From Chlorokybus atmophyticus (taxonomy: Eukaryota; Plantae; Mesostigma and Chlorokybus algae), in contig RHPI01002119.1 of NCBI GenBank assembly GCA_009103225.1, positions 372,001-436,000 of the forward strand: a DNA stretch of 64,000 bases. Direction: 5' to 3'. Numbering within the stretch: position 1 is the stretch's first letter; each line of letters begins with the position of its first letter. A program made the position numbers and the translations under genes. Shown piece by piece: positions 16,274-62,465 of the stretch. The notes under the pieces are model-generated. The model searched no databases and was not told the DNA's origin. It was given only the letters and a program-made list of their open reading frames with translations.

Positions 16274-18087
16274 TCAATCATGAGACGTTCGCAACAGCTT
16301 AAGGTCATCATCATCAGCATGTATCTGCGGTTTGGCCTCGTCCCACGGCCCGTTTATCTGGTGCTTATACTTCTGTATGCGTATAAGCCAGAAGGGGCAG
16401 ACGAAAGTCACAAACGCGATGACGACCGCGTAAAGAGTAGTCAGCAGCTGACTCAAAGGCAGCAAAAGCACAGCTGTCCCGATGGCCATTACCGAAGATA
16501 TGACCAGATGCAGAGTGGGCGAGACACACTTGATGTGATGGCAAAGAATGGGGAAAAGGATGAACAGCTCCAGCGAAAAGAGTATCAACGCGAACACGTG
16601 GCGGTGAGACGGGAGTCGCGAAGCCATCAGCACCGAAGCAACAATCGCGGCATTGAGGGACACATTGCCAGTGAGGCGTGCAGTGACGGTGTTGGCGTAG
16701 CTGTAGTCATAAAGGAAGAGATGAAGCAGCAGTAAGCAGATGGTTGTGGCCCAGATGGTGTCGGAGCTGATGGTGCTGGTGAGTGTTTGGAGTATAGGTG
16801 ACAACACGTACACCCCGCACACGAAGAGCGTGCACTGAAGGGCGTTACGTTGGAGCGCGTGCGAGGGGAGAGGCCTCTTGGTCAGAGTAAGGCGCAGGAT
16901 GAAGCCAATAGTGAGGAATGCTGCATCCAGCGCGAGGAGAGACTTGGCCAGCACAGACTCCATCAGCGTGTACGTGCACATCACCGCCAGCAGCACCACC
17001 GTGCTGATCTGCTGCGACACGGCCGTGGAGTCCCTGACCTGTGCGTGCAGAGATTGTAGACTTGAAATTGGGTGAATGCACACATGCACACATGCAGCTT
17101 CGCTGTACGTGCTGCTGCTATGCATGGCAGGAAGCAATCCCTCTAAATACCCTGTTTGCGCCATGCCATGCAAAGGGCCCTTCCTAAATGAAAGCAGCTT
17201 GGCTGCTTGCTTGCTGCCAAGTTTGTTAGGGCCATGCATGTGTGTGCATGCATGCATGCAATTATCACTATCACTTAATCACGAGTTCATGGCCATGTAT
17301 GCACTAACCTGCGCAATGTGGCTTTAAGTCCGTTCAGGAGGCAAACACAAGAATAAACGCATATCACCCGCGCGTAATGGTACACACTTCAGCAAGCGTG
17401 TTGCACACAATGCATGCATGCATGTAGCCAAACCTTTGTTATTTGGAAGACGCGAACAAGAGCATAGCTCTGCTGCTTACTGAATGCATACCAACTTGCA
17501 ATGCAATATCCTTCGGAAGCCCCTCTCCTTTGATTGAACACACTTATGACGCACAACACGCACTTCGCAGTCGCACAACCACCTCACACGCACTGAAATC
17601 AACCCACTTATACGTAGTATAGACCAACATCATGTAGCTGCGTGCCCTATCTGTATGTTCAGTAGCTCTTTGATGTATGTACTGCATTGTGTTGTTGATC
17701 AATGTATGCACTTGGGCACCGCAATAAACGCTGCATGCTCACCACAGTCCAGTAGTCGTGGGTCCTCACGTCAGCATTAAACACCATGGAGGCAAGGAAC
17801 GACTCGTCGGTGTGGTTGTCGCCATAAGGCTGCCGGGCCCACAGCACCTTGCGCCATGGCACCGCTGGGGTGGCGGTGGTGGCGCCATCGCCCGACGCCG
17901 ACGCCGAGGAGGACGACGCCGCCGACGTCCCCAAGGACCTTGTCCTGATGGGCCGGAGACGCCTCGGGCTGGGACTCTCGGCGCTCGGGACGGGGGAGGA
18001 CGGTAACGTGGTGTCGGCGGCGGCGGCGGTGGGGGAACCGCTGGCCGCCGCCACCCCTACCGCCGCCGCTGCCGACGCCGTTGGCAT
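16274..18087 (-). CDS. PIGC: Phosphatidylinositol N-acetylglucosaminyltransferase subunit C (GPI2); 2 exons, intron 17039-17742
   Basis: WRKVLWARQPYGDNHTDESFL, LSPILQTLTSTISSDTIWA, SLNAAIVASVLMASRL, KYKHQINGPWDEA. Confidence 0.95.
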
Positions 18088-41363: not shown

Positions 41364-41506
41364 TCACTGGGCCCGTCCAGTCTGCTGGGGCTGCTGTGTG
41401 TAGTGAACCTGCTGGGGCCGCTGCTGGGGCTGCTGTGTGTAGTAACCACCCTGCTGAGGCTGCTGCTGGGGCTGCTGTGTCTGCTGCCGCTGCTGAGTGT
41501 AGTAAG

Positions 41507-41541
<35 letters not shown>

Positions 41542-43510
41542 TGCTCGCTGCCAGCTGGCGCCTGGCCCCCAGAGGATCTGTATGGGTCAGTTCTGCCGTG
41601 AGCGAACGGCCCGCGCTGGACCTCCTCACGCCACGCCATGGCGTTCTCCTCGAACGCTCTCGCCACATACTCCATCGCCTGGACGGGGACAGAGTGTGTA
41701 ACCAAAAGCTAAGCACATGCGGCCATACACACATATGTTGCCAACAGTGTCCTTACGCGGGCGATGTTGTCACGAAGGCCGTAGGCAGACTTGAGCAAGT
41801 CCATGACGTCCGAGTGGACGTTCTGCTCCTCGCACTGATACTCCTGCATCACCGACATCGTTTCGTGCTCCAGCCTCCTCGCCTCATCCTGAAACTTGGC
41901 CAGCAGCTCATCTTGCTCCTGATACGCGGATGATGACAACAGTCGGTTGTGTACACATGCACACCCCAACATCATCATCATCTTGCCTGGGGTGAGGCCT
42001 TGGCGAGTGCCTCGCGGTGTCTCTCGTACGCCTTCTCGACGCGGTCGCGTGCGTCGTACTTGCGCGCCTCCTTGTACTCGAGGGCCTCCACGCGCCGCAC
42101 CAGCGCGTCGTACCTGTCAAGCCACTCCTTCACAGGGGCAAGTTGCTCCTCGAGACGCTTCTTCAGACGGTCGGGCATGTCCTTCAGACGAGAGGCATTG
42201 CCCAAAGGCCCTGATCACGAAGTAACAATCAGTGGTGATATGTTGACACACTATACTTCGCACAACACACACGCGTGCTAGTGTGGTGTATCAGTGGCGA
42301 TTTTGATGACACTCTGTTTGCACAACACATGTATAGCGCGCGTTTGCGCATACGCGCATGCTTGTGAGTGCTCTCATGCTCACGCTTACGCTCACACATG
42401 CGCTTGTGCACACAAAAATATTACTCACCGGCGTTTTCCCAGTCTACTTCTTCAAAGCGCAGGATCTTTTTCTCGATGATAGGCTCCTCGATGCGCTCCA
42501 CGTGGGACGGTGCCTGCACCACGACGGGTTCCACCACGCGCTGCTGCTGCGTGACGCCGCCTTCAGGTACCCATCCTGCTGTCGTTCCTGTAGTTGTTGT
42601 TGTGCCTGTTGTTCCCATGGTTGTTGTCGTTGTGCCCGTCATTGGCGTTGTCGTGGTGGCGGTGGTTGGGCTTGTGGTCGATGTGGGTGAGGAGCTCTCG
42701 TGGTGTTTGGAGCCGCTGGTGAGCTTGTCTTTGACTTTGTTCAGGAAGCCCTTCTTGTGGCCTTCACCCTCGCCCGAGCCCTCTTCTGTTGTTGTTCCTC
42801 CGGTGGTCGTGTACGCATGCTGTTGTTGTTGTTGCTGTTGCTGTTGTTGGGTTGTTGTTGTTGTAGTAGTGTAGGGAAAGGCGGTTGTTGTCTGACCCGC
42901 ACCGCCCCCACCCGAAACCACGCCCGTGACGATACCACCCACATCGCGCTCCGCAACATAGCCGCGCTCCACCACCTTCTCCACCGTCTGCATGTAGGTA
43001 AACAGAAACACAATCAAGCCTTTCCAACCACGTCCCACACCCCGACATAACCCCCACATGCGTGCACACAGTCTGCCCCCCGCACGCAGCTTGCGTGTGT
43101 CTCAAACATCAGTCCCAGAGCAGGCAGTACTTTGCACAAAGAGCAGACTGCATGGTGGTGGTGACAGCAACAACAACCACCACTCGCCCCCCTCACCTGC
43201 ACGACGATCTGCGGCTGTATCTCCCTCTCCCTGACCCTGTACCCCATGAGCGTCTCCACCTCCCTCTCTCCTCCCCTCAGCCCCGGCAGTTCCGCCTCCA
43301 GCAGCCGCCTGCTCCCCTCGAAGAAGCGCGTGTCGATGGACGCCAGGTCCGAGTGGGAGGCGCGGGTGCGGACGGCGAAGTCGCGCAACTCCTCCAGGAT
43401 GGCGCGCGTGCGGCGGGCGGGGAAACCGGCGTCGGCGGGGAGGCGAGGGGCCTGTGTGAGAGAGAGTGAGAGAGAGCGAGAGCGAGAGCGAGAGCGAGAG
43501 CGAGAGCGAG

Positions 43511-43548
<38 letters not shown>

Positions 43549-44129
43549 TCATTGTGTGCGCACCTGCACACACACACGCACACAACAGGAGAGGGGGAGA
43601 GGGAGAGGGAGAGGGAGGGAGGGAGGTGTTTCTGCTTGGCTTACTGATAGGGCGAGGAAGCGTCTGCGTTCTATGCGTGGTTGGACGTCCACTGTAGTGA
43701 AGACCTCTTCGTGGATGACAGGGGGCTCCAGCTTCTCCATGTGCTGCGTGTTGGGTACGGGGTGAGTCGAGCGGTACAACACTGTGGGGGGATGTGACGG
43801 CATTGACGTTCACACGCAGCGCGGTCTCATGGCATGCATGCTGGTGTGTACGGAGGTCGTGCATGCACAGGCCTGGCAGGCAGCCATTGCATAGCGCATG
43901 CACACACAAGCAGTAGAGTAACTTACATGCATGCATGCACGGTGCCCAAAAGCAAGGGTAGGTCACAGGTTAGTAACAAACACACACACAATGTCCTATT
44001 GCATAACTCCATGCACACAGAGCGCTGCAGCAACTCAGTGCAACAGCCCCTCCTGACCTCGCCATGGAGGACGCCGGTGATGCCCTTGGTGCCTGGCTCC
44101 ACCTTCACTTCGCACGGGACCCCAGCCAT
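41364..44129 (-). CDS. Paralogue A: unknown helical protein with Thr/Gly-rich insert, dehydrin-like K-segment and Gln-rich tail
   Basis: Spliced exons: MAGVPCEVKVEPGTKGITGVLHGE | HMEKLEPPVIHEEVFTTVDVQPRIERRRFLALS | APRLPADAGFP.. | ..HKKGFLNKVKDKLTSG..EEVDWENA | .. | .. | AMEYVARAFEENAMAWREEV.. Confidence 0.8.
43458..43545. repeat. Compound (GA)n/(GAGAGC)n microsatellite in an intron
   Basis: Read directly. Confidence 0.95.
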
Positions 44130-45694
44130 GGCGCCGGCGACCGCAACAAGGGCGACGATGGCGGCCACAACCTCACCTTGCCACCAGCATTTGTAGCTTG
44201 GTTATGCACGCTCCTTTCCTTTCCAAGCCTCAGCTCTCGCTCCTTTCTCTTGCTGCTGGCAATTGTTGTAACCACGCGTTTGCACCCAAGAGTGATGGCA
44301 CCTCTCAAGCATTGGGTTGCTACGTCAACGCGCTCACTGCAGCCCCTGCTTTACGAGAGATTGACACGAGTTTGAGAGGCTTGTAAGCTAGGAGACCTGC
44401 TGCTTGCAGCAATGACACGTTTGCTCTGGCATTGTCATTCACTTGTCACCGCAGTTGTCATATCTCCTGTGCTGTACTGCACTACAGCAGTACCGCTCTG
44501 TACTGCACTGCTTGCTTGCGCTGTTGTATGCACCATACGGCGTCACCAGTGACTCATGGTGCCGCTGGCGTTCCTTATTGTGGTTGGCACCTCTGTCTCT
44601 CTCTCCGTCACAAGTCCAATGGCTTTGACAAAGAGGAGTCTGTTGCGCTGCGTTAGGGCCATGCATAGAGGACAACAGGTGGTTCTACATGCACGTGATA
44701 AGTGTTGCGACTGCGTGATCAAGGTATTGGCGTACTTCAATCTGGAGTAGGTAAAAGTTCCACGTGCAGTGTGTAAAAAGACTGCAATGCGAACATTACA
44801 GTGTAGCGCTGTGTGCATACCCACAGGGTGTGTTCCTTTGCACCCTGGTTGCATTTATTTGAATTATGAAGCGTAATGCAGGTGCAATTTTCATGTTCAC
44901 TCAGGCCAAAGAGAGTCTACATATTAGTGAACATTAAACATCATGTCATATATCATGTATCACGCATATCCACAACGCGCACAGCATACTCAGCGTACAC
45001 GCACAGCACATGATTCATAGAGCACACAAAAAATGTATACTCGCATCATTAACACACAAGCAACGCATATGTCAGCTGTATCAAGCAAGTTGAAGGGCGC
45101 GCACACATACTGTCAATGTCACAAGTAGACAGTCTGGGTGCAGGTGACAGCCAGGTAGAAGCTACCATCCTTCGCTAGGTCAATCCTCAAGGTTGTTGTT
45201 AGTTCTGTTGGTTGAGGCTCTCAGGCAGCAACATAATATGCCATAATCGGGTATAAGTACACAGTCAGAAAACAAATATCAAGCGCCACACCTGAGTATA
45301 CACAGTATATCATTAATGGCGCAACAGAGAATGTGTGTAACACAACATCCGCAGCTTGCAATATGTCTTACAACATTACATGCTGTGCAGGTGCCAACGC
45401 ATGCATACATTACAGCGCCGGATAGCATGCACGCACACAAACACAATCACCAACACACTGCGAGAATGCGATGGAAAAGGATCTGGAAAAGAAAGAAAAG
45501 ATAGAAAGAAGGAAAGAGGATCTACCTAGCATGCTAGACTTCTGTACAGTTGCGGTTGTACAACAAGCTGCATCTCTAAAACCACTACCGCTTGCATTAA
45601 AAACACCCTCAGCAGCGAGTACCACTTCCATTCAACTATCTCATCTTCGAATACATTTACAGCTACTGATTCTGTACAAGCTCAGTCAGTCCTC

Positions 45695-48166
45695 TCAATA
45701 AGCTGCGGAGGTTGCAGGCTGTCCATATGTGTTGGTGGCAGCCACGGGTGTCTTGGACGGGTATCCGGGTGCGCTGCTGTAGGCAGAGGTAGGCTGCTGC
45801 GACTGCTCCTGCTCCAGGAGGTTATCGTGGACGTAAGGGCCGACGGTACGACCGCCGGAGAAGGGACCGTTGGGAACCTCCTCGCGCCAGGCTAGCGCGT
45901 TCTCCTCGAAGGCCTTGGCAAGGTACTCCATGGCCTGTTGGCAAGAGAGAGATAGTAAGATGCATGACATACTATAAATGCAAGCGCGTATGCAGTCTGT
46001 ATGCGTGCCATAGTACATAGACATTAAGTGGCAATCTCTTACCCTGGCGAGGTTTGCGCGCAGGGAATAGGCGGACTTGAGCAGTGACATAAGCTCAGCG
46101 TGGAGAGCCTCCTCATCGCGCTGGTACTCCTGCATGGCAGCCATGGCCGCACGCTCAAGGGTCTGCGCCTCAGTCTGGTAGGTGGTTGCCAGGGTACCTT
46201 GCTCCTGAGACAACAACCAAACCATGTCACACACTTCACAAACAAAAAAGAGCTGAAAAGTATAGCCTCCAACTCCTCACCTCTACGGATGCGGCGCCCA
46301 AGCTCTCCTTATGCCTTGCATATGCGCGCTCCAGAGACTCGCGCGCCTCATACTTGGCAGACTCCTTGTACTCAAGGGCCTCAATGCGGCCGCGCATGGC
46401 ATCGTAGGTCGCCAGCCATGCACGGATGGGGGCGAGCTGCTCCTGGAGACGCGTGCGGAGACGTGTGTTCATGTCGCGAAGGCGAGAACTGTTGCCAACG
46501 GGACCTGAAAAGGTAATAATATTGTCAGAGTCAAGCAAATGTGGGCTCAAGTAATACAGGTGCCAACATATTTTATAGGTGCAATGTGGATATGCATGTG
46601 CGTGTGTGCAAACGTGCATGTGTGCAAGCGTTGGAAACTCATCTCTCACCTGCTGCTTCCCAGTCGACTTCCTCATAGCGGAGTGCCTGCTTCTGGATGA
46701 TAGGTTCCTCGACCTTCTCCACACGTGCAGGTCCCTGAACAACCACAGGCTCACCAACACGCTGTGCGTTGGCCGCAATAGCTCCAGTTCCAACACTTGT
46801 TGTGACAAAGTCCGACGAGGTTGGTGTGGTCATCCCCATGGTTGGGGTGGACGATCCCAGGATGGGGCTTCCTCCTGTCATCATGTGAGGCTGGCCCGTA
46901 GGCATGCCACCGTGCATGGGTGAGGAAGACTGGAAGCCAGTTGTTGGCGACATGGTTTGGCCAGCAGCGTATGTTGGAGATGTTGTGTCGGAAGATGTGT
47001 CGGTGGAGGACTTGCCAAGGACCTTATCTTTGATCTTGCTGATGATGCCTTGCTTCTTTGGCTGACCCTCGTGATCGTACTCTTCCTGTCCCTCAGTAGG
47101 AGAAGCGTAGCTCATCGGGCTGCTTGACGTTGTATAGGAGGACGTTTGCGTGGTTGTCGCACCGGGAAGACTTGAGCTGAACGCGCCACCCATGGACGAA
47201 GTGGTGATGTTGGTTACAACTCCACCCACCTCTTGCTCAGAGATATACTCCCTCTCGGTAACTTGCTCCACCGTCTGTACGATCGCTTGCGGCTGCACAA
47301 TTCTCTCCCTGACACGGTATCCCAACAGAGTCTCCACCTCAGCTGTCTCCAGTCTCAGGCCGGGCAACTCAGCGCCGAGGAGAGAGGCGGATGCGTCGAA
47401 GATGTTGGTGCCAAAGTTGGTGAGGTACTCGTAGGAAGCGCGGTTGCGCTCGGCAAAGTCACGCAACTCCTCCCAGATGGCGCGGTCGCGCTGGATGGGG
47501 AAACCAGCATCGGCGGGGAGGCGAGGAGCCTAATATGATGAGAGAGCGATGGTTAGTCAATGACTTGGCTGTTAGTTGTGTGCCAACCACTTACTGTGCA
47601 ACACTCCACATTGTGCGTATGTGTGGAACACGGGCAGGTATGGATAGAAAGGGATAGAGAGAGGCTTACCGAGAGGGCGAGGTAGCGGCGGCGTTCAATG
47701 CGGGGTTGGACGTCGACGGTGGTGAAGACCTGTTCCTGCACTATTGTGCGCTCCAGCTTGCCCATGTGCTGCAGATGGTCACACGTCAGGTCAGTAAGGC
47801 AAGACATGGATGCATGTGTGTAGTAAAAGAAATAGCTCGTTTGCATGGGGGAGGTATACTAAGAATCAATGCAAGCCAGATATAACACTTGTCTTGTCAT
47901 CACATTGCGGTCACGGCCCAGGGCATTCACAGTGCATGTGACAGCTGACCACGCACTGAAGACACCAGTCATGCAGACACGTATACACACAGTTGCCTTG
48001 TAGTTGTCACCTCTCCATGGAGCACGCCCTGGAGGCCCCTGTGTCCAGGCTCAAAGGATTGGGCCACTCCAGCAACAGCTGAGCCCAGCCCAGTTCCAGC
48101 CATGCCTTGGGTTATGCCCTGGGTCGTGCCTGTCGTCCCATACGTGGGAGTTGTTGACGTCTGCAT
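45695..48166 (-). CDS. Paralogue B of the same unknown family, with dehydrin-like K-segment
   Basis: MQTSTTPTYGTTG..GLQGVLHGE | HMGKLERTIVQEQVFTTVDVQPRIERRRYLALS | APRLPADAGFP..KKQGIISKIKDKVLG..EEVDWEAA | .. | AMEYLAKAFEENALAWREEV.. Most intron positions are shared with paralogue A. Confidence 0.82.
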
Positions 48167-48789
48167 CCTTTACGAACTCAAGCTCGCACAAAAACAACGA
48201 CACTCTTCCAATGCCACCACAAGCTCACTAGTGCTTGCTTGCTTGCTTGCTCACAAGCTGCTGCTCCGCTGATCAACAAGAGTCCAAAGTCGAAGCTGCA
48301 AGTCGGAAGCTAACGAATACCGACCTATGCAACAAGCAGGCATATATACTGGTGCACTGAACACAGCCCGCTTGCCAGTTACGCTGGACACTGCTCACTT
48401 GCATGCACAGGAGATGGGGCATGCCTCAACAGATACGATTGTCCATGGCCATGGCCATGGCGTATCCGTTGGGATACAGTGTGCTATCCCTCCTCCTTGC
48501 AGAAGCAAGCGTAATCAAGGCGGATTGCCGTATCCGCATCGGACCGAGTGAGGCCAGCTGGCACGCGCTTATGCAGGGGGCGGGTTTGGGACTAGTGTTG
48601 GGGTGTCGTGCTTGCAGTTGTGTGCCCGAGTAGGGCGTGTTTGGGACCGTTATGCGGAGAGTAATCCGGGATCTTGGTTGGGAGAAGGTTTGCTGCTTAC
48701 GTCAGCAGACTGTCGCAATCATGTGCATAGGGAGATCTGTTCTTTGCGTTATGTTTATCCGTTTCGAGATTGTCACATGAAAGAAATGA

Positions 48790-49170
48790 GGCTGCATGAA
48801 TTAGGTCAGTGCCTGTACATTATTGAAGTACGGTTGATGGAAGATCTATTGCATGGCCAAGTCATGGAAGCAAGCATCATGGTAGTGCCATACCCAGATA
48901 TCCACACAAATCAGGGTCACGGTTACACGCCTTTGACCTGATTGTTAACGATCTCTCCAAGCGACTAATGTTTGGACTGGTACAGTGTACTTGCTGGCGC
49001 ATCAAAAGGGCTACTCTAAACACCGCAGCTCGCTCATAGGTACATCTCTTGGACGACAATGCCACCCCCTTCACTCTTGTCAACTTGTCACGCGTCAACA
49101 AGCGCATGCCACTGTGTCGTTTACTTGAAACAGATCTCGAGCGCGCCACGTGTTACCTCTGCTCTGACAC
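48790..49170 (+). mobile_element. Decayed hAT-like transposase fragment
   Basis: RYPHKSGSRLHAFDLIVNDLSK resembles YPH..C.AH.LDL..ED. LLDDNATPFT resembles L.RP.ATRF. An internal stop is present. Confidence 0.35.
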
Positions 49171-49664
49171 CCATCTTCTCAATTGACGTGGCGCGCTACC
49201 CTATGCCGCGTCACATCAAGGCCCGCTGACAGATTCGCCGCGCATAGCAGTCTCAAATTGACTAGCACTCAGTATGCGGCGTCTTGTATGCCGCAGCACC
49301 TGTAGCGGATATCGTCATAAGCTGGCCTATGTTGCGTATATCGACACATGAGGCTTACGTAACGTCAGCTCACGTGACGGTTTGGCTTCCCGATTTACTT
49401 ACTGACCAACCCTTTTTTTGATATCTGCTTTAGCACCATAAAAGACACTGGTAATTTGGTTGGATTTCGACGGGATCCGGTTAACTGTTGAGCAGCAGCC
49501 TGCTATTAGCAGGAGAGTAACTGCGATGTGAGGGGTGGCGTGCAACTGCATGCGGAGTGCGGCGGCGGCGGCGGCGGCGGCGGAGAGACGCTGAAGAAGC
49601 GCCACGTGTTTGAGGAGACAGGCTTCAGAGAGTCTTGTAGGGTAGGGTCCAGTAGCTAGGCACA

Positions 49665-50182
49665 ATGATGGGGGGCTTCAACTCTCAGGAGGACATGGTG
49701 GGTGTACATTTTCTCAGCGACGTGATGCATATGTGTTAGTTACTTGGGTGATTGTTACTCACGCAGTAAGCAACAGGTTACACATGTGTGATTCAAGTCT
49801 CACAACTCCACTTGGCTAGCTTCTTCACATGCATGCAGGTGGCCAGCTTCAAGGCGTTCCTGAAGAGGGAAGAGAACAGAGAGATCGTTGCTGAGCACAC
49901 CCGACAAGGTGCCAACGCATGTGCTTGACTTGTGTTGGAATGATGCTGCACACGTGATGCAAGAGAAGGTCATATCTCCTTGCAGAGGTGGACGAGTGGT
50001 TCAAGTTGGATCGGCAGATCCGCGTGGCGGATTTTGACGAGCGCTTCAAGGCCCTCGACAAACGCACACAAGCGCAACTCATGGTAACGCTCGTGAATGT
50101 GTATAAACGAACGCATGAGCATGCCCCATGAAAACATTGTGTGCACGCACTATCACATGGTTGCCTGCATACACATGCCAGT

Positions 50183-59750: not shown

Positions 59751-61145
59751 ATGGTGGGGGAGCAACAACTCCGTACCGCACTCATCCGGCAAGCAGTCAT
59801 GTTGCACAGGCCTGAGGGCAACACATTAAGACAGATGATGGGGATGCAAGAGGGCAGCGCCGCTCGAGCCCGTCTCGTGACATGGCTCGTTGCCAATCAC
59901 CCTGCTGTCCCCCTGTTTGCCTTTGGCAACCGAGCGTCATGGTTGGGGGCATTCGTTCGTTCGCTGCGACAAGCATACGACGAGGCTGCCACCACAGCCC
60001 CGGACACGCTGAAGGGAGTGCAAGAGGCAATGCTGTGGCTGCCAGGGGTGGAAGCCGCACGGCAACGGCGGCGCATCGCCATTGCTCATGAGCTACACGC
60101 ACAGCAGACTGACCTCCAGCGCACCCTACGTGCTCGCGCCATGACCGTGCTTGATGTGGGAGTGGTACAAGGAAGGTGGGATGCCTACATCATGATGGCA
60201 GGGATCTTGCGAGTCCCCACCATCACTCACGACATGCGGCGACAGCTACTACGCGCCGTATACCTGCAGCCCATGCCTCAATATCATCATTGGACCGACA
60301 CGGACACCGAGCCCACGGCCACGTGGGAAGGGACATTGGTCAGAGAAGCGGCTCATGCTGTTCGATGGACGTACGCCGCGGAGCAAGCTGAACACGAGGC
60401 AGGCCCACAAACACCGGGTCCGCCGGGGTTTCCTCCACAGCCATTGGGTACACCCGCGGGCATGATTCCAGCTTCGCAGAGGCGTCATCCACCTGCGCCG
60501 CCACCACAACCAGCGCCGGAACCTCCAGCACCGAGGCCCCCCCGTGTCTACCAACCACCACGACAAGGTCGGTTCGGCAGAGGGAGAGGGCAAGGAGGGG
60601 GTTCTCCGGACCCAGCAGGCACAGGAGCTCTGGCTGCCATGCGCTCAGCACCGCCAGCTGAGACAACTGAGTCAGAGGTACAGACACCTCGTATGAAGAG
60701 GCTGCGTATCGACGCCAATGCTGCCATGGTGGCCAACCGAGGCAAGCACGATACCATCAACGGTCTGGCACCCAAGCGAGTAATGTTGGACACCGGAGCA
60801 CAGCCTGTCATCATCGGGCGCTTCCTTGCGCGGTCCCTAGGCATAACCAGCTCCGACTTGGTGCCGTGCCCGTACGTGTTGGACACTGCCACAGGTAGCC
60901 GAGATAAGGTGATGGGAGTCACCAGGGAGGCCTTTTGCATTCGGTTGACAGGGCTGGACCCAACCCACACAACCGAGATCGTCCAGCAATGTATGGTCAC
61001 CAATGCCGGCTCCTTCGACTTTCTGCTTGGGCAGGACTTCAACTTCCCTGTGGGCATGGGCCTCGACTGCTGGATAGAGCGAGCGTGGTTTCGGCCATAT
61101 TGGGATGAGGATGACGGAGAGGTACAGGGTTTCCTGCCTCTCTAG
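59751..61145 (+). pseudogene. Unknown domain plus retroviral-type aspartic protease
   Basis: RVMLDTGAQPVIIG (DTG at 60789-60797) and FDFLLGQDF. Confidence 0.8.
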
Positions 61146-62465
61146 TTGGTCTCGCGCACGCGCGCCCAACGCAAAATGGTTGCCATGGCCACACGCAGCC
61201 ACGCCCGCACCCGGAAGGCTGTAATGGCCACATACGACGGCACTCGGACGCAAGTCGCTGCTGGTGCCACGGCCCCGTGTCGAACCGGCGACTCCTCTCC
61301 CATCCCGTACAACGAGGAGCAGGAGGATGCCACCGTGAAAGTAGCATTACAAGACCCAGCTGAACGGCGCTGGCGCGCACAGGTGGACGCACACATCTTG
61401 CTCAGCCATCCCCTGATCACCACGCGCTTCCCCAACTACCGAAGCCACGTCAAGGTGCAGGACCGCCATATGGTGGCCACCGGAGTGGTGAAGTTCCACA
61501 CCTTTCGCAGGCAACAGGGCATCACAGTGTTGGAGCTGTTTGGAGGCATTGGCAGTGGTCTTGCTGCGGTCCTCAACACAGGCGTGAAGACTGTCAAATA
61601 CTATTATTGCGACCCAGACCCACACGCGCAAACGATCCTCAAACACCACTTACGCCAACTGCACGCCAGGTATCCACGTCAACTACCCCTCTCGGCGTTG
61701 CAAGGCAGCCTCAAAGCATTGCCACAGGACATCCGGCTGATCACTGAAGATCATCTACTGTCCCTTGGCAACGTCGACCTGTTAATAGCGGGATGGGAAT
61801 GTCAAGGGCACTCCAGGGCAGGCAAGGGGCAAGGCCTCGAAAACCCTCGCTCCGGGCAAATCTGGGAGCTGATGAGAATCATCCACCTCCTTCAACACCA
61901 CCAGATCTCCAGACCCCTGGGGTACGTCATCGAAAATGTGCATTCAGAGGACGACAAGCGTCCGCACGTGGTCTCCAGCTACCGACAAGTTTGCTCCATT
62001 CTGGGGCACCCACTCAAGGTGAACGCAACATGACATGGCTCGCGCGCACATCGTGTACGTGCCAAATGGACAAACTTGGCCACCGTGGAGGAACTCATGA
62101 CCGCCGAATACACACGCAGCGCTCGGCCGCGCAACCTGCTGGTCGACGACATCTTTGACCCCAGCCGCACACCACAACCTGTCCTGCGTCATGACCACAA
62201 CCACTTCTACCCGTGCAATCAGCCCGGTCAGCCCCGTCGCGCACTCCCAACATTGGTGTCCTACCCGGGCTCCTACGCATTTCGAAACGTTGGTGACGGG
62301 ATGGTGTTCGATGCGACCACCAACAGGCTGGAAGAACCCAACACACGCGAACGTGAACGCGCCATGGGATTCTTCCCCAACAGCATCACGGGCTCATCGC
62401 TGACGGACAGTTAGCAATGCCAGCTGCTTGGTCGCGCCATGGACCAAAACAGCATGGTATGGCTG
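61146..62465 (+). pseudogene. C5 cytosine DNA methyltransferase domain (DNMT3-like) in the pol frame, two premature stops
   Basis: Motif I VLELFGGIG (61527-61553), IV DLLIAGWECQGHS (Cys at 61800), VI YVIENV (61932), VIII AHRVRAKWTNL, IX RERERAMGF, X QLLGRAM. Confidence 0.9.

Follow-up and report, generated by a model that had tools for sequence, protein, structure and literature searches.

A tandem gene pair in Chlorokybus atmophyticus encoding predicted helical-hairpin proteins with a dehydrin K-segment-like motif

The DNA analysed here, a stretch of 64,000 nucleotides from Chlorokybus atmophyticus (contig RHPI01002119.1, positions 372,001 to 436,000 of the forward strand) that is referred to below as the window, carries two paralogous genes on the minus strand within positions 41364-48166, counted from the first letter of the window. 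Gene A comprises 561 codons in seven coding exons, and gene B 586 codons in six, with exon borders set from the sequence and checked by script; each encoded protein carries, inside a divergent insert, a Lys-rich 15-mer that resembles the K-segment of dehydrins (below, the K-like motif), and a helical hairpin is predicted on the C-terminal side of this insert. The splice model of gene B is identical, residue for residue, to a public protein that was returned by the profile search (P0001; EukProt Chlorokybus atmophyticus, jgi/Chlat1/7054/Chrsp56S06720) and that bears no functional name; by this match the window is nuclear DNA of Chlorokybus, and residue numbers refer to P0001. The features of the pair are as follows, with identities and ratios of nonsynonymous to synonymous divergence (dN/dS) taken between the two copies.

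44058-44129, minus strand: gene A exon 1, 24 codons, ATG at 44129; in frame and followed by a GT donor; ends in step with gene B exon 1 in the alignment (motif GVLHGE)
43645-43743, minus strand: gene A exon 2, 33 codons coding for a conserved basic block; 76% identity to gene B exon 2, dN/dS 0.21
43197-43451, minus strand: gene A exon 3, 85 codons, including the equivalent of predicted helix 1; 66% identity to the first 85 residues of gene B exon 3
42429-42987, minus strand: gene A exon 4, 559 nucleotides, ending in phase 1; Val/Glu-rich borders, insert and K-like motif
about 42541-42909, minus strand: gene A insert, Thr/Gly/Gln-rich, inside exon 4
42715-42759, minus strand: gene A K-like 15-mer HKKGFLNKVKDKLTS in the canonical register, His at position 1
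41987-42210, minus strand: gene A exon 5, 224 nucleotides, counterpart of hairpin helix 2; 58% identity to gene B
41757-41918, minus strand: gene A exon 6, 54 codons, equivalent to hairpin helix 3; 52% identity to gene B
41364-41678, minus strand: gene A exon 7, 104 codons and stop; end of helix 3, then a repetitive Gln/Tyr-rich tail
48011-48166, minus strand: gene B exon 1, 52 codons coding for an N-terminus rich in Gly and Thr; in full agreement with P0001 residues 1-52
47670-47768, minus strand: gene B exon 2, 33 codons; from the splice model and P0001
46650-47529, minus strand: gene B exon 3, 880 nucleotides, equivalent to gene A exons 3 and 4 in one piece, with no intron between them; from the splice model and P0001
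47323-47499, minus strand: predicted helix 1 in gene B exon 3; from the structure model
46747-47214, minus strand: gene B insert, Ser/Thr/Gly-rich, in exon 3
47014-47058, minus strand: gene B K-like 15-mer KKQGIISKIKDKVLG in the canonical register, P0001 residues 243-257
46281-46504, minus strand: gene B exon 4, 224 nucleotides, predicted hairpin helix 2 (P0001 residues 380-449); predicted local distance difference test score (pLDDT) 75-89 in both structure models
46043-46204, minus strand: gene B exon 5, 54 codons, predicted hairpin helix 3; in both structure models
45695-45934, minus strand: gene B exon 6, 79 codons and stop; helix 3 ends here at residue 526 and is followed by a tail rich in Pro, Ser, Ala and Tyr

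All exon borders in the two genes combine an AG acceptor with a GT donor, except for a single GC donor in gene A (41986-41985); the corresponding GC-AG intron after exon 5 has the donor CAG/GCAAGA, with no usable GT ahead of an in-frame stop, whereas the homologous intron of gene B has an ordinary GT donor. Five introns coincide in position and phase between A and B, which bears out most of the common exon structure described in the first-pass annotation of this DNA; the likeness is incomplete, however, since the gene A intron at 42988-43196 has no counterpart in gene B, where the same codon boundary lies at 47274/47275. To judge from the alignment, this intron was lost or gained after the duplication. 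A protein from gene A was not returned by any of the searches, including those of a collection clustered at 90% identity, although many of its words are common to B; the public proteome may lack gene A or contain it in a different or faulty model. Coding CAG/CAA runs occur in gene A exon 7 (41382-41551) and exon 4 (42821-42864), and exon 7 also has a 42-nucleotide tandem unit in 2.4-2.9 copies; the C-terminal tail of A is Gln/Tyr-rich and prion-like, and that of B consists largely of Pro, Ser, Ala and Tyr. Within intron 2 of gene A (43458-43545), about 88 nucleotides form a (GA)n/(CT)n microsatellite.

Exon by exon, the proteins of A and B are 45-76% identical. Over 339 gap-free codons the proportion of synonymous differences (pS) is 0.63 and the synonymous divergence (dS) is about 1.4, near saturation, at a dN/dS of 0.22; it follows that the genes were duplicated long ago and that purifying selection acts on each of them. 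A pseudogene or an annotation artefact is ruled out by the intact reading frames together with this ratio, and a secreted mucin-like glycoprotein is ruled out as well, neither N-terminus having a hydrophobic signal-like stretch. The sequence blocks by which the pair had originally been recognised (VFTTVDVQPRIERRRxLALS, PRLPADAGFP, EELRDFA, EEVDWExA and AMEYxAxAFEENAxAWREEV) were all found again in the exon-wise alignments, and the conserved blocks outside the insert show dN/dS values of 0.05-0.33. The insert is bordered by two conserved Val/Glu/Gln/Pro-rich segments, P0001 residues 155-190 (47215-47322) and 347-379 (46648-46746), the latter with the lowest dN/dS of the gene (0.05). In style these border segments resemble the Val/Glu/Pro repeats of protist cortical proteins; they have no Pfam match. 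Further copies of the genes were not found in the window by tblastn.

The K-segment consensus of dehydrins is EKKGIMDKIKEKLPG (PMC5415607). The 15-mer of A is identical to it at 7 of 15 positions and that of B at 8 of 15, including the Lys residues 2, 8, 10 and 12 and Gly 4, with BLOSUM62 scores of 42 (A) and 43 (B). These scores were not reached in any of 5000 composition-preserving shuffles of each exon (0/5000), and the two motifs are the best two among the 78,626 15-mers in the six reading frames of the window, of which the third best scores 32; the Lys-rich 15-mers lie where the first-pass annotation had placed them, apart from the canonical register in A, which starts one residue earlier, and they stand out from shuffled controls. 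In both copies, as in the consensus, Lys occupies positions 2, 8, 10 and 12 and Gly position 4, positions 5, 6, 9 and 13 are hydrophobic, and position 11 is acidic; the terminal Pro14-Gly15 of the consensus is not kept, being Thr-Ser in A and Leu-Gly in B. On a helical wheel the hydrophobic residues fall within 56 degrees, the flanking Lys residues at 76-116 degrees and the Asp at 176 degrees, the same arrangement as in the canonical K-segment, so that the motif has the class-A amphipathic geometry of the K-segment, with similar hydrophobic moments.

The surroundings of the motif follow the same pattern. All six Lys residues of each insert, which is roughly 150 residues long, lie in or beside the motif, and elsewhere the B protein favours Arg (37 Arg vs. 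15 Lys); this confinement of Lys to the motif within an Arg-preferring protein fits the reported avoidance of Arg by K-segments (PMC5415607). In the alignment of the two inserts the motif is the top-scoring island and the sole one conserved outside Thr/Ser/Gly/Gln identities, while the remainder aligns in a near-random way, with several indels; a divergent Thr/Ser/Gly-rich insert around each 15-mer had been proposed earlier and is confirmed, with the motif as its best conserved part. Ser and Thr each make up 18% of the B insert and Gly 12%, and the grand average of hydropathy of this insert is -0.55; the flanks of the motif are Gly/Thr/Ser-rich, His flanks the motif of A, and a Ser-rich acidic tract comes after the motif. 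Each protein has a single motif in its 561 (A) or 586 (B) amino acids, and Y, F or typical S segments were not seen in the exon translations. A 35-residue fragment of A returned Dehydrin as the only family among the 24,736 of Pfam (E 0.0023, 18.8 bits, the gathering cut-off of Dehydrin, PF00257, being 30.6 bits), and in the exon-by-exon search the Dehydrin profile could be aligned over 97 residues of A (profile positions 29-131).

Searches for relatives used full-length B in the form of P0001, and gene A exon by exon. The exhaustive HMMER profile was built from exon 3 of B together with exons 3 and 4 of A and covers residues 86-378 of the 586; against 1.84 billion representative proteins it returned only the protein itself and one bacterial match, which was rejected as compositional, falling in the low-complexity part. 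Word-index searches over 5.8 billion clusters, with the C-terminal helices included, likewise returned only the protein itself. In Pfam, searched exon by exon and with the full B protein, no family reached its cut-off; the sequences of the PDB gave no match, the ESM Atlas gave no usable match to B exon 3, an exact look-up of contigs encoding the protein gave none, and a metagenome scan with the single protein produced 64 pattern matches and no relatives. Rfam had no match in the window between 40 and 50 kb, and the gene identifier Chrsp56S06720 is not mentioned in the literature searched. The conserved core accordingly falls outside the characterised sequence families covered by the Pfam, HMMER, word-index and PDB searches, as the first-pass annotation had supposed, and the gene family has so far been seen only in Chlorokybus; as a caveat, very distant kin may escape all search methods of this kind.

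The fold of P0001 was predicted with AlphaFold2 from the sequence alone (model 1), and again, as a test of robustness, with a shallow clean alignment (A4) of the gene A exon pieces (model 2). In model 1, helices are predicted at residues 97-137, 147-154, 248-255, 380-449 and 452-526, the long ones with pLDDT values of 80-88. An antiparallel helical hairpin of 145 residues, consisting of helices 380/384-449 and 452-526, has pLDDT values of 75-89 in both models, which agrees with the earlier suggestion of a helical or coiled-coil protein around the motif. In model 1 all three helices align to the BAR domain of Bin1, which ranks first in an aligner independent of Foldseek (Z 13.6, root-mean-square deviation 3.5 Å, 195/201 residues; Z values below about 13 are common among helical bundles with this aligner), and nearly all of the top 30 or so rows are BAR, F-BAR or I-BAR domains. 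A language-model feature search with residues 375-535 found only BAR-type families, at scores of 0.81-0.86, under the tool's guide line of 0.9. The helical hairpin is thus robust as a prediction, the BAR-like three-helix bundle is not, and membership in the BAR families is unproven.

Taken together, the motif and the predicted fold are consistent with membrane binding through a tethered K-like helix on a coiled-coil scaffold, which is considered the most likely mechanism, at a probability of about one in three. The pair consists of two old, selectively maintained duplicates, each encoding a putative cytosolic protein of about 60 kDa. From the N-terminus this protein is composed of a basic conserved segment, a predicted helix, a loop of about 225 residues, the predicted 145-residue hairpin, and a tail that is rich in Gln, Tyr and Pro and probably disordered; in the middle of the loop, a Ser/Thr/Gly-rich stretch, likewise probably disordered, carries the K-like 15-mer. 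The hairpin would oligomerise the protein, and the N-terminal helix would possibly complete a BAR-like three-helix bundle. K-segments bind membranes and gain helicity there (PMC11763121; PMC5415607), and the tethered K-like segment may similarly turn helical on anionic lipid surfaces; combined with the scaffold, it would let the protein bind membranes peripherally and in a multivalent way, and thereby stabilise or shape them. Chlorokybus is a subaerial or terrestrial alga (PMC7027972), and such a membrane role would be plausible in a life of drying and rewetting. The 1.5 kb upstream of gene B (48167-49666) contain three ACGTG[GT]C sites, similar to abscisic-acid-responsive elements and G-boxes, vs. 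a window mean of 0.36 per kb, and one such site lies upstream of gene A; the enrichment upstream of B is at most weak and is not counted as evidence for a stress role.

Several observations weigh against the membrane-binding proposal. A comparison with the Pfam Dehydrin family, as the first-pass annotation had proposed, did not go its way: A stays below the cut-off of 30.6 bits both as the fragment (18.8 bits) and as exon 4 (14.3 bits), and B has no match, either as full-length P0001 at E <= 10 or as a fragment. As judged from the sequences, the resemblance to the K-segment is real and selected, and the formal Pfam family test fails; a motif of 15 residues can arise by convergence. Within the motif, residues 248-255 are helical in model 1 only, at low confidence. 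In model 2 helix 1 drops to a pLDDT of about 42-47, so that the BAR-like packing is not robust, and the matches become generic hairpins (dynein stalk, YscO, FliJ, PspA, SMC), with BAR appearing at rank 43. Foldseek found no match to model 1 at E <= 0.001; above this threshold its listing consists mostly of BAR domains, with doublet-microtubule chains as well, and the BAR-type feature scores likewise stay short of their guide line. The profiles BAR, BAR_2, BAR_3, arfaptin, Vps5, FCH and Pil1 gave no match to P0001 at E <= 10. Finally, the B protein is acidic overall (net charge -16); among its helices, helix 2, which has 11 Arg, is the one with a positive net charge (+4), whereas that of helix 1 is -5 and that of helix 3 is -7.

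A first alternative is a generic coiled-coil scaffold of cytoskeletal, flagellar or basal-body type, or a condensate former. In it the Lys-rich motif would be convergent and serve some other purpose: it might bind proteins or nucleic acids, act as a phospho-switch beside the Ser/Thr tract, or dock onto the acidic helices of its own molecule. This explanation is rated only slightly lower than the membrane binder. It draws on the confinement of the model 2 matches to generic antiparallel hairpins, which include axonemal doublet proteins and the dynein stalk, on the doublet-microtubule chains in the Foldseek listing, on the acidic protein with low-complexity Gln/Tyr tails, on the failure of Pfam to recognise the motif of B, and on the flagellate zoospores that Chlorokybus makes (PMC7027972); yet it leaves unaccounted the retention of all K-segment-specific features in both copies despite saturated synonymous divergence, and the dehydrin-like Gly/Thr/Ser-rich flanks with His. 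If instead the motif had no function of its own and were a chance Lys cluster inherited from the common ancestor of A and B, its shortness would be easily understood, and with only two sequences of common ancestry the two occurrences are not independent; but the insert is otherwise near-random and full of indels, while the motif stays its top island at a dS of about 1.4, and this possibility appears quite improbable.

A third alternative would take the insert as a true dehydrin-derived module, homologous to the K- and phi-segments of embryophytes, and either embedded later or ancestral to free dehydrins. The Pfam Dehydrin alignment to A extends over 97 residues, well beyond the 15-mer, the A fragment has a local match at E 0.0023, the insert is Gly/Thr-rich in the manner of phi-segments, His flanks the motif of A as it does most K-segments, and the Ser-rich acidic tract after the motif recalls KS-type dehydrins and the KS-like segment of reticulons. 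This origin is nevertheless unlikely: every score is below the Pfam cut-off and partly compositional, B is without a match, no intron flanks the insert, so that nothing points to exon shuffling, 15 residues are too short for showing homology, and the algal dehydrins of 2025 have no alignable similarity to those of land plants (PMC11763121). Very improbable, lastly, are BAR-type membrane-furrow scaffolds that work in this walled alga like the eisosome proteins Pil1 and Lsp1 of fungi. Model 1 is BAR-like and has Lsp1 among its matches (Z 9.6, 13% identity), and eisosome-like furrows have been reported in walled algae (review PMC5753163); the BAR fold, however, is not robust, a Pil1 match in Pfam is absent, and Lsp1 scores under many other BAR classes.

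A bearing on the origins of dehydrins is no more than possible for the proposed membrane binder with its tethered K-like helix. For a long time dehydrins were regarded as an invention of land plants; seven green algal genomes gave no match (Malik et al., PMC5415607), and algal K-segments, in the first algal dehydrin sequences from Klebsormidium and some chlorophytes, were first reported, as sequence only, in 2025 (Strimbeck 2025, PMC11763121). The gene pair places a selectively retained K-segment look-alike inside a protein of Chlorokybus that is predicted to be part-folded, in contrast to a free disordered one, on the earliest-diverging streptophyte branch. It would be a long shot to suppose that the K-segment is older than dehydrins, having existed on this deepest branch as a portable, lipid-binding amphipathic helix in disordered regions of part-folded and otherwise unrelated proteins, the present pair among them, and that the free-standing dehydrins of embryophytes descend from one such module. 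If the motif binds lipids, the pair would be a concrete test case for an origin of the K-segment as a general membrane anchor, and would supply a natural design of scaffold plus K-segment to set beside N-BAR proteins; should the motif not bind them, the pair would be a warning that K-like motifs, and antibodies against them, also mark non-dehydrins.

Elsewhere in the window, a single open reading frame of 327 amino acids on the minus strand (16277-17257) strongly matches GPI2 (PIG-C, a phosphatidylinositol N-acetylglucosaminyltransferase subunit; E 4e-67), and on the plus strand (59751-62030) retroelement open reading frames include an aspartyl protease domain (E 9e-8), followed by an open reading frame that matches C-5 cytosine DNA methylases (E 5e-9).

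In comparison with known systems, the dehydrins (PF00257; Kn and KS/H-type) share with the pair a Lys-rich, class-A amphipathic 15-mer with Lys preferred over Arg, the Lys residues 2, 8, 10 and 12, Gly 4, the hydrophobic positions 5, 6, 9 and 13, and the acidic position 11; the Gly/Thr/Ser-rich flanks of the motif have their parallel in the GT-motifs and Gly-Thr-rich phi-segments around dehydrin K-segments (PMC5415607), and the His near the motif of A and the Ser-rich tract after it are further likenesses. In contrast to dehydrins, the pair falls below the Pfam cut-off, lacks the terminal Pro-Gly, has one motif in a protein of about 60 kDa, and appears not to be wholly disordered, given its predicted hairpin and conserved blocks. 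A and B are not dehydrins, because of the confidently predicted 145-residue helical hairpin. N-BAR proteins (Bin1/amphiphysin, endophilin) are similar in that the three-helix antiparallel bundle of model 1 superposes on the Bin1 BAR domain, and the pair would follow their logic of combining a scaffold, an amphipathic helix and a bulky disordered region; disordered regions of BAR proteins matter in membrane remodelling (PMC6363457). Unlike N-BAR proteins, the pair has no sequence match to a BAR family, its helices are mostly acidic, the fold is absent from model 2, and its amphipathic motif is predicted to hang on long tethers in an internal loop instead of standing at the N-terminus.

The closest analogy is provided by plant reticulons and many 'pseudo-dehydrins', which contain K-like or KS-like segments (Strimbeck 2025, PMC11763121); the name Chlorokybus was not found in the searched text of the supplements of that study. 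As in these proteins, a single K-like segment is followed by Ser-rich acidic residues in a larger, part-structured protein, and the pair fits the description of a 'pseudo-dehydrin' in having a single K-like segment with the other dehydrin segments not seen. It differs from reticulons by the absence of a reticulon homology domain and of any Pfam match, and from reticulons and 'pseudo-dehydrins' alike in that its motif stands in the middle of an internal loop, predicted to be disordered, and not near the N-terminus, and in the restriction of its family to Chlorokybus. The first-pass annotation had considered here a possible undescribed desiccation or membrane-protection family with a K-segment grafted into a helical protein; this holds insofar as the searches gave the pair no characterised relative, whereas K-like segments in non-dehydrins, and true K-segments in green algae, have already been described (PMC11763121), which makes the kind less new than had been assumed. 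The pair is therefore best filed as a lineage-restricted variant of non-dehydrins that bear a K-like segment.

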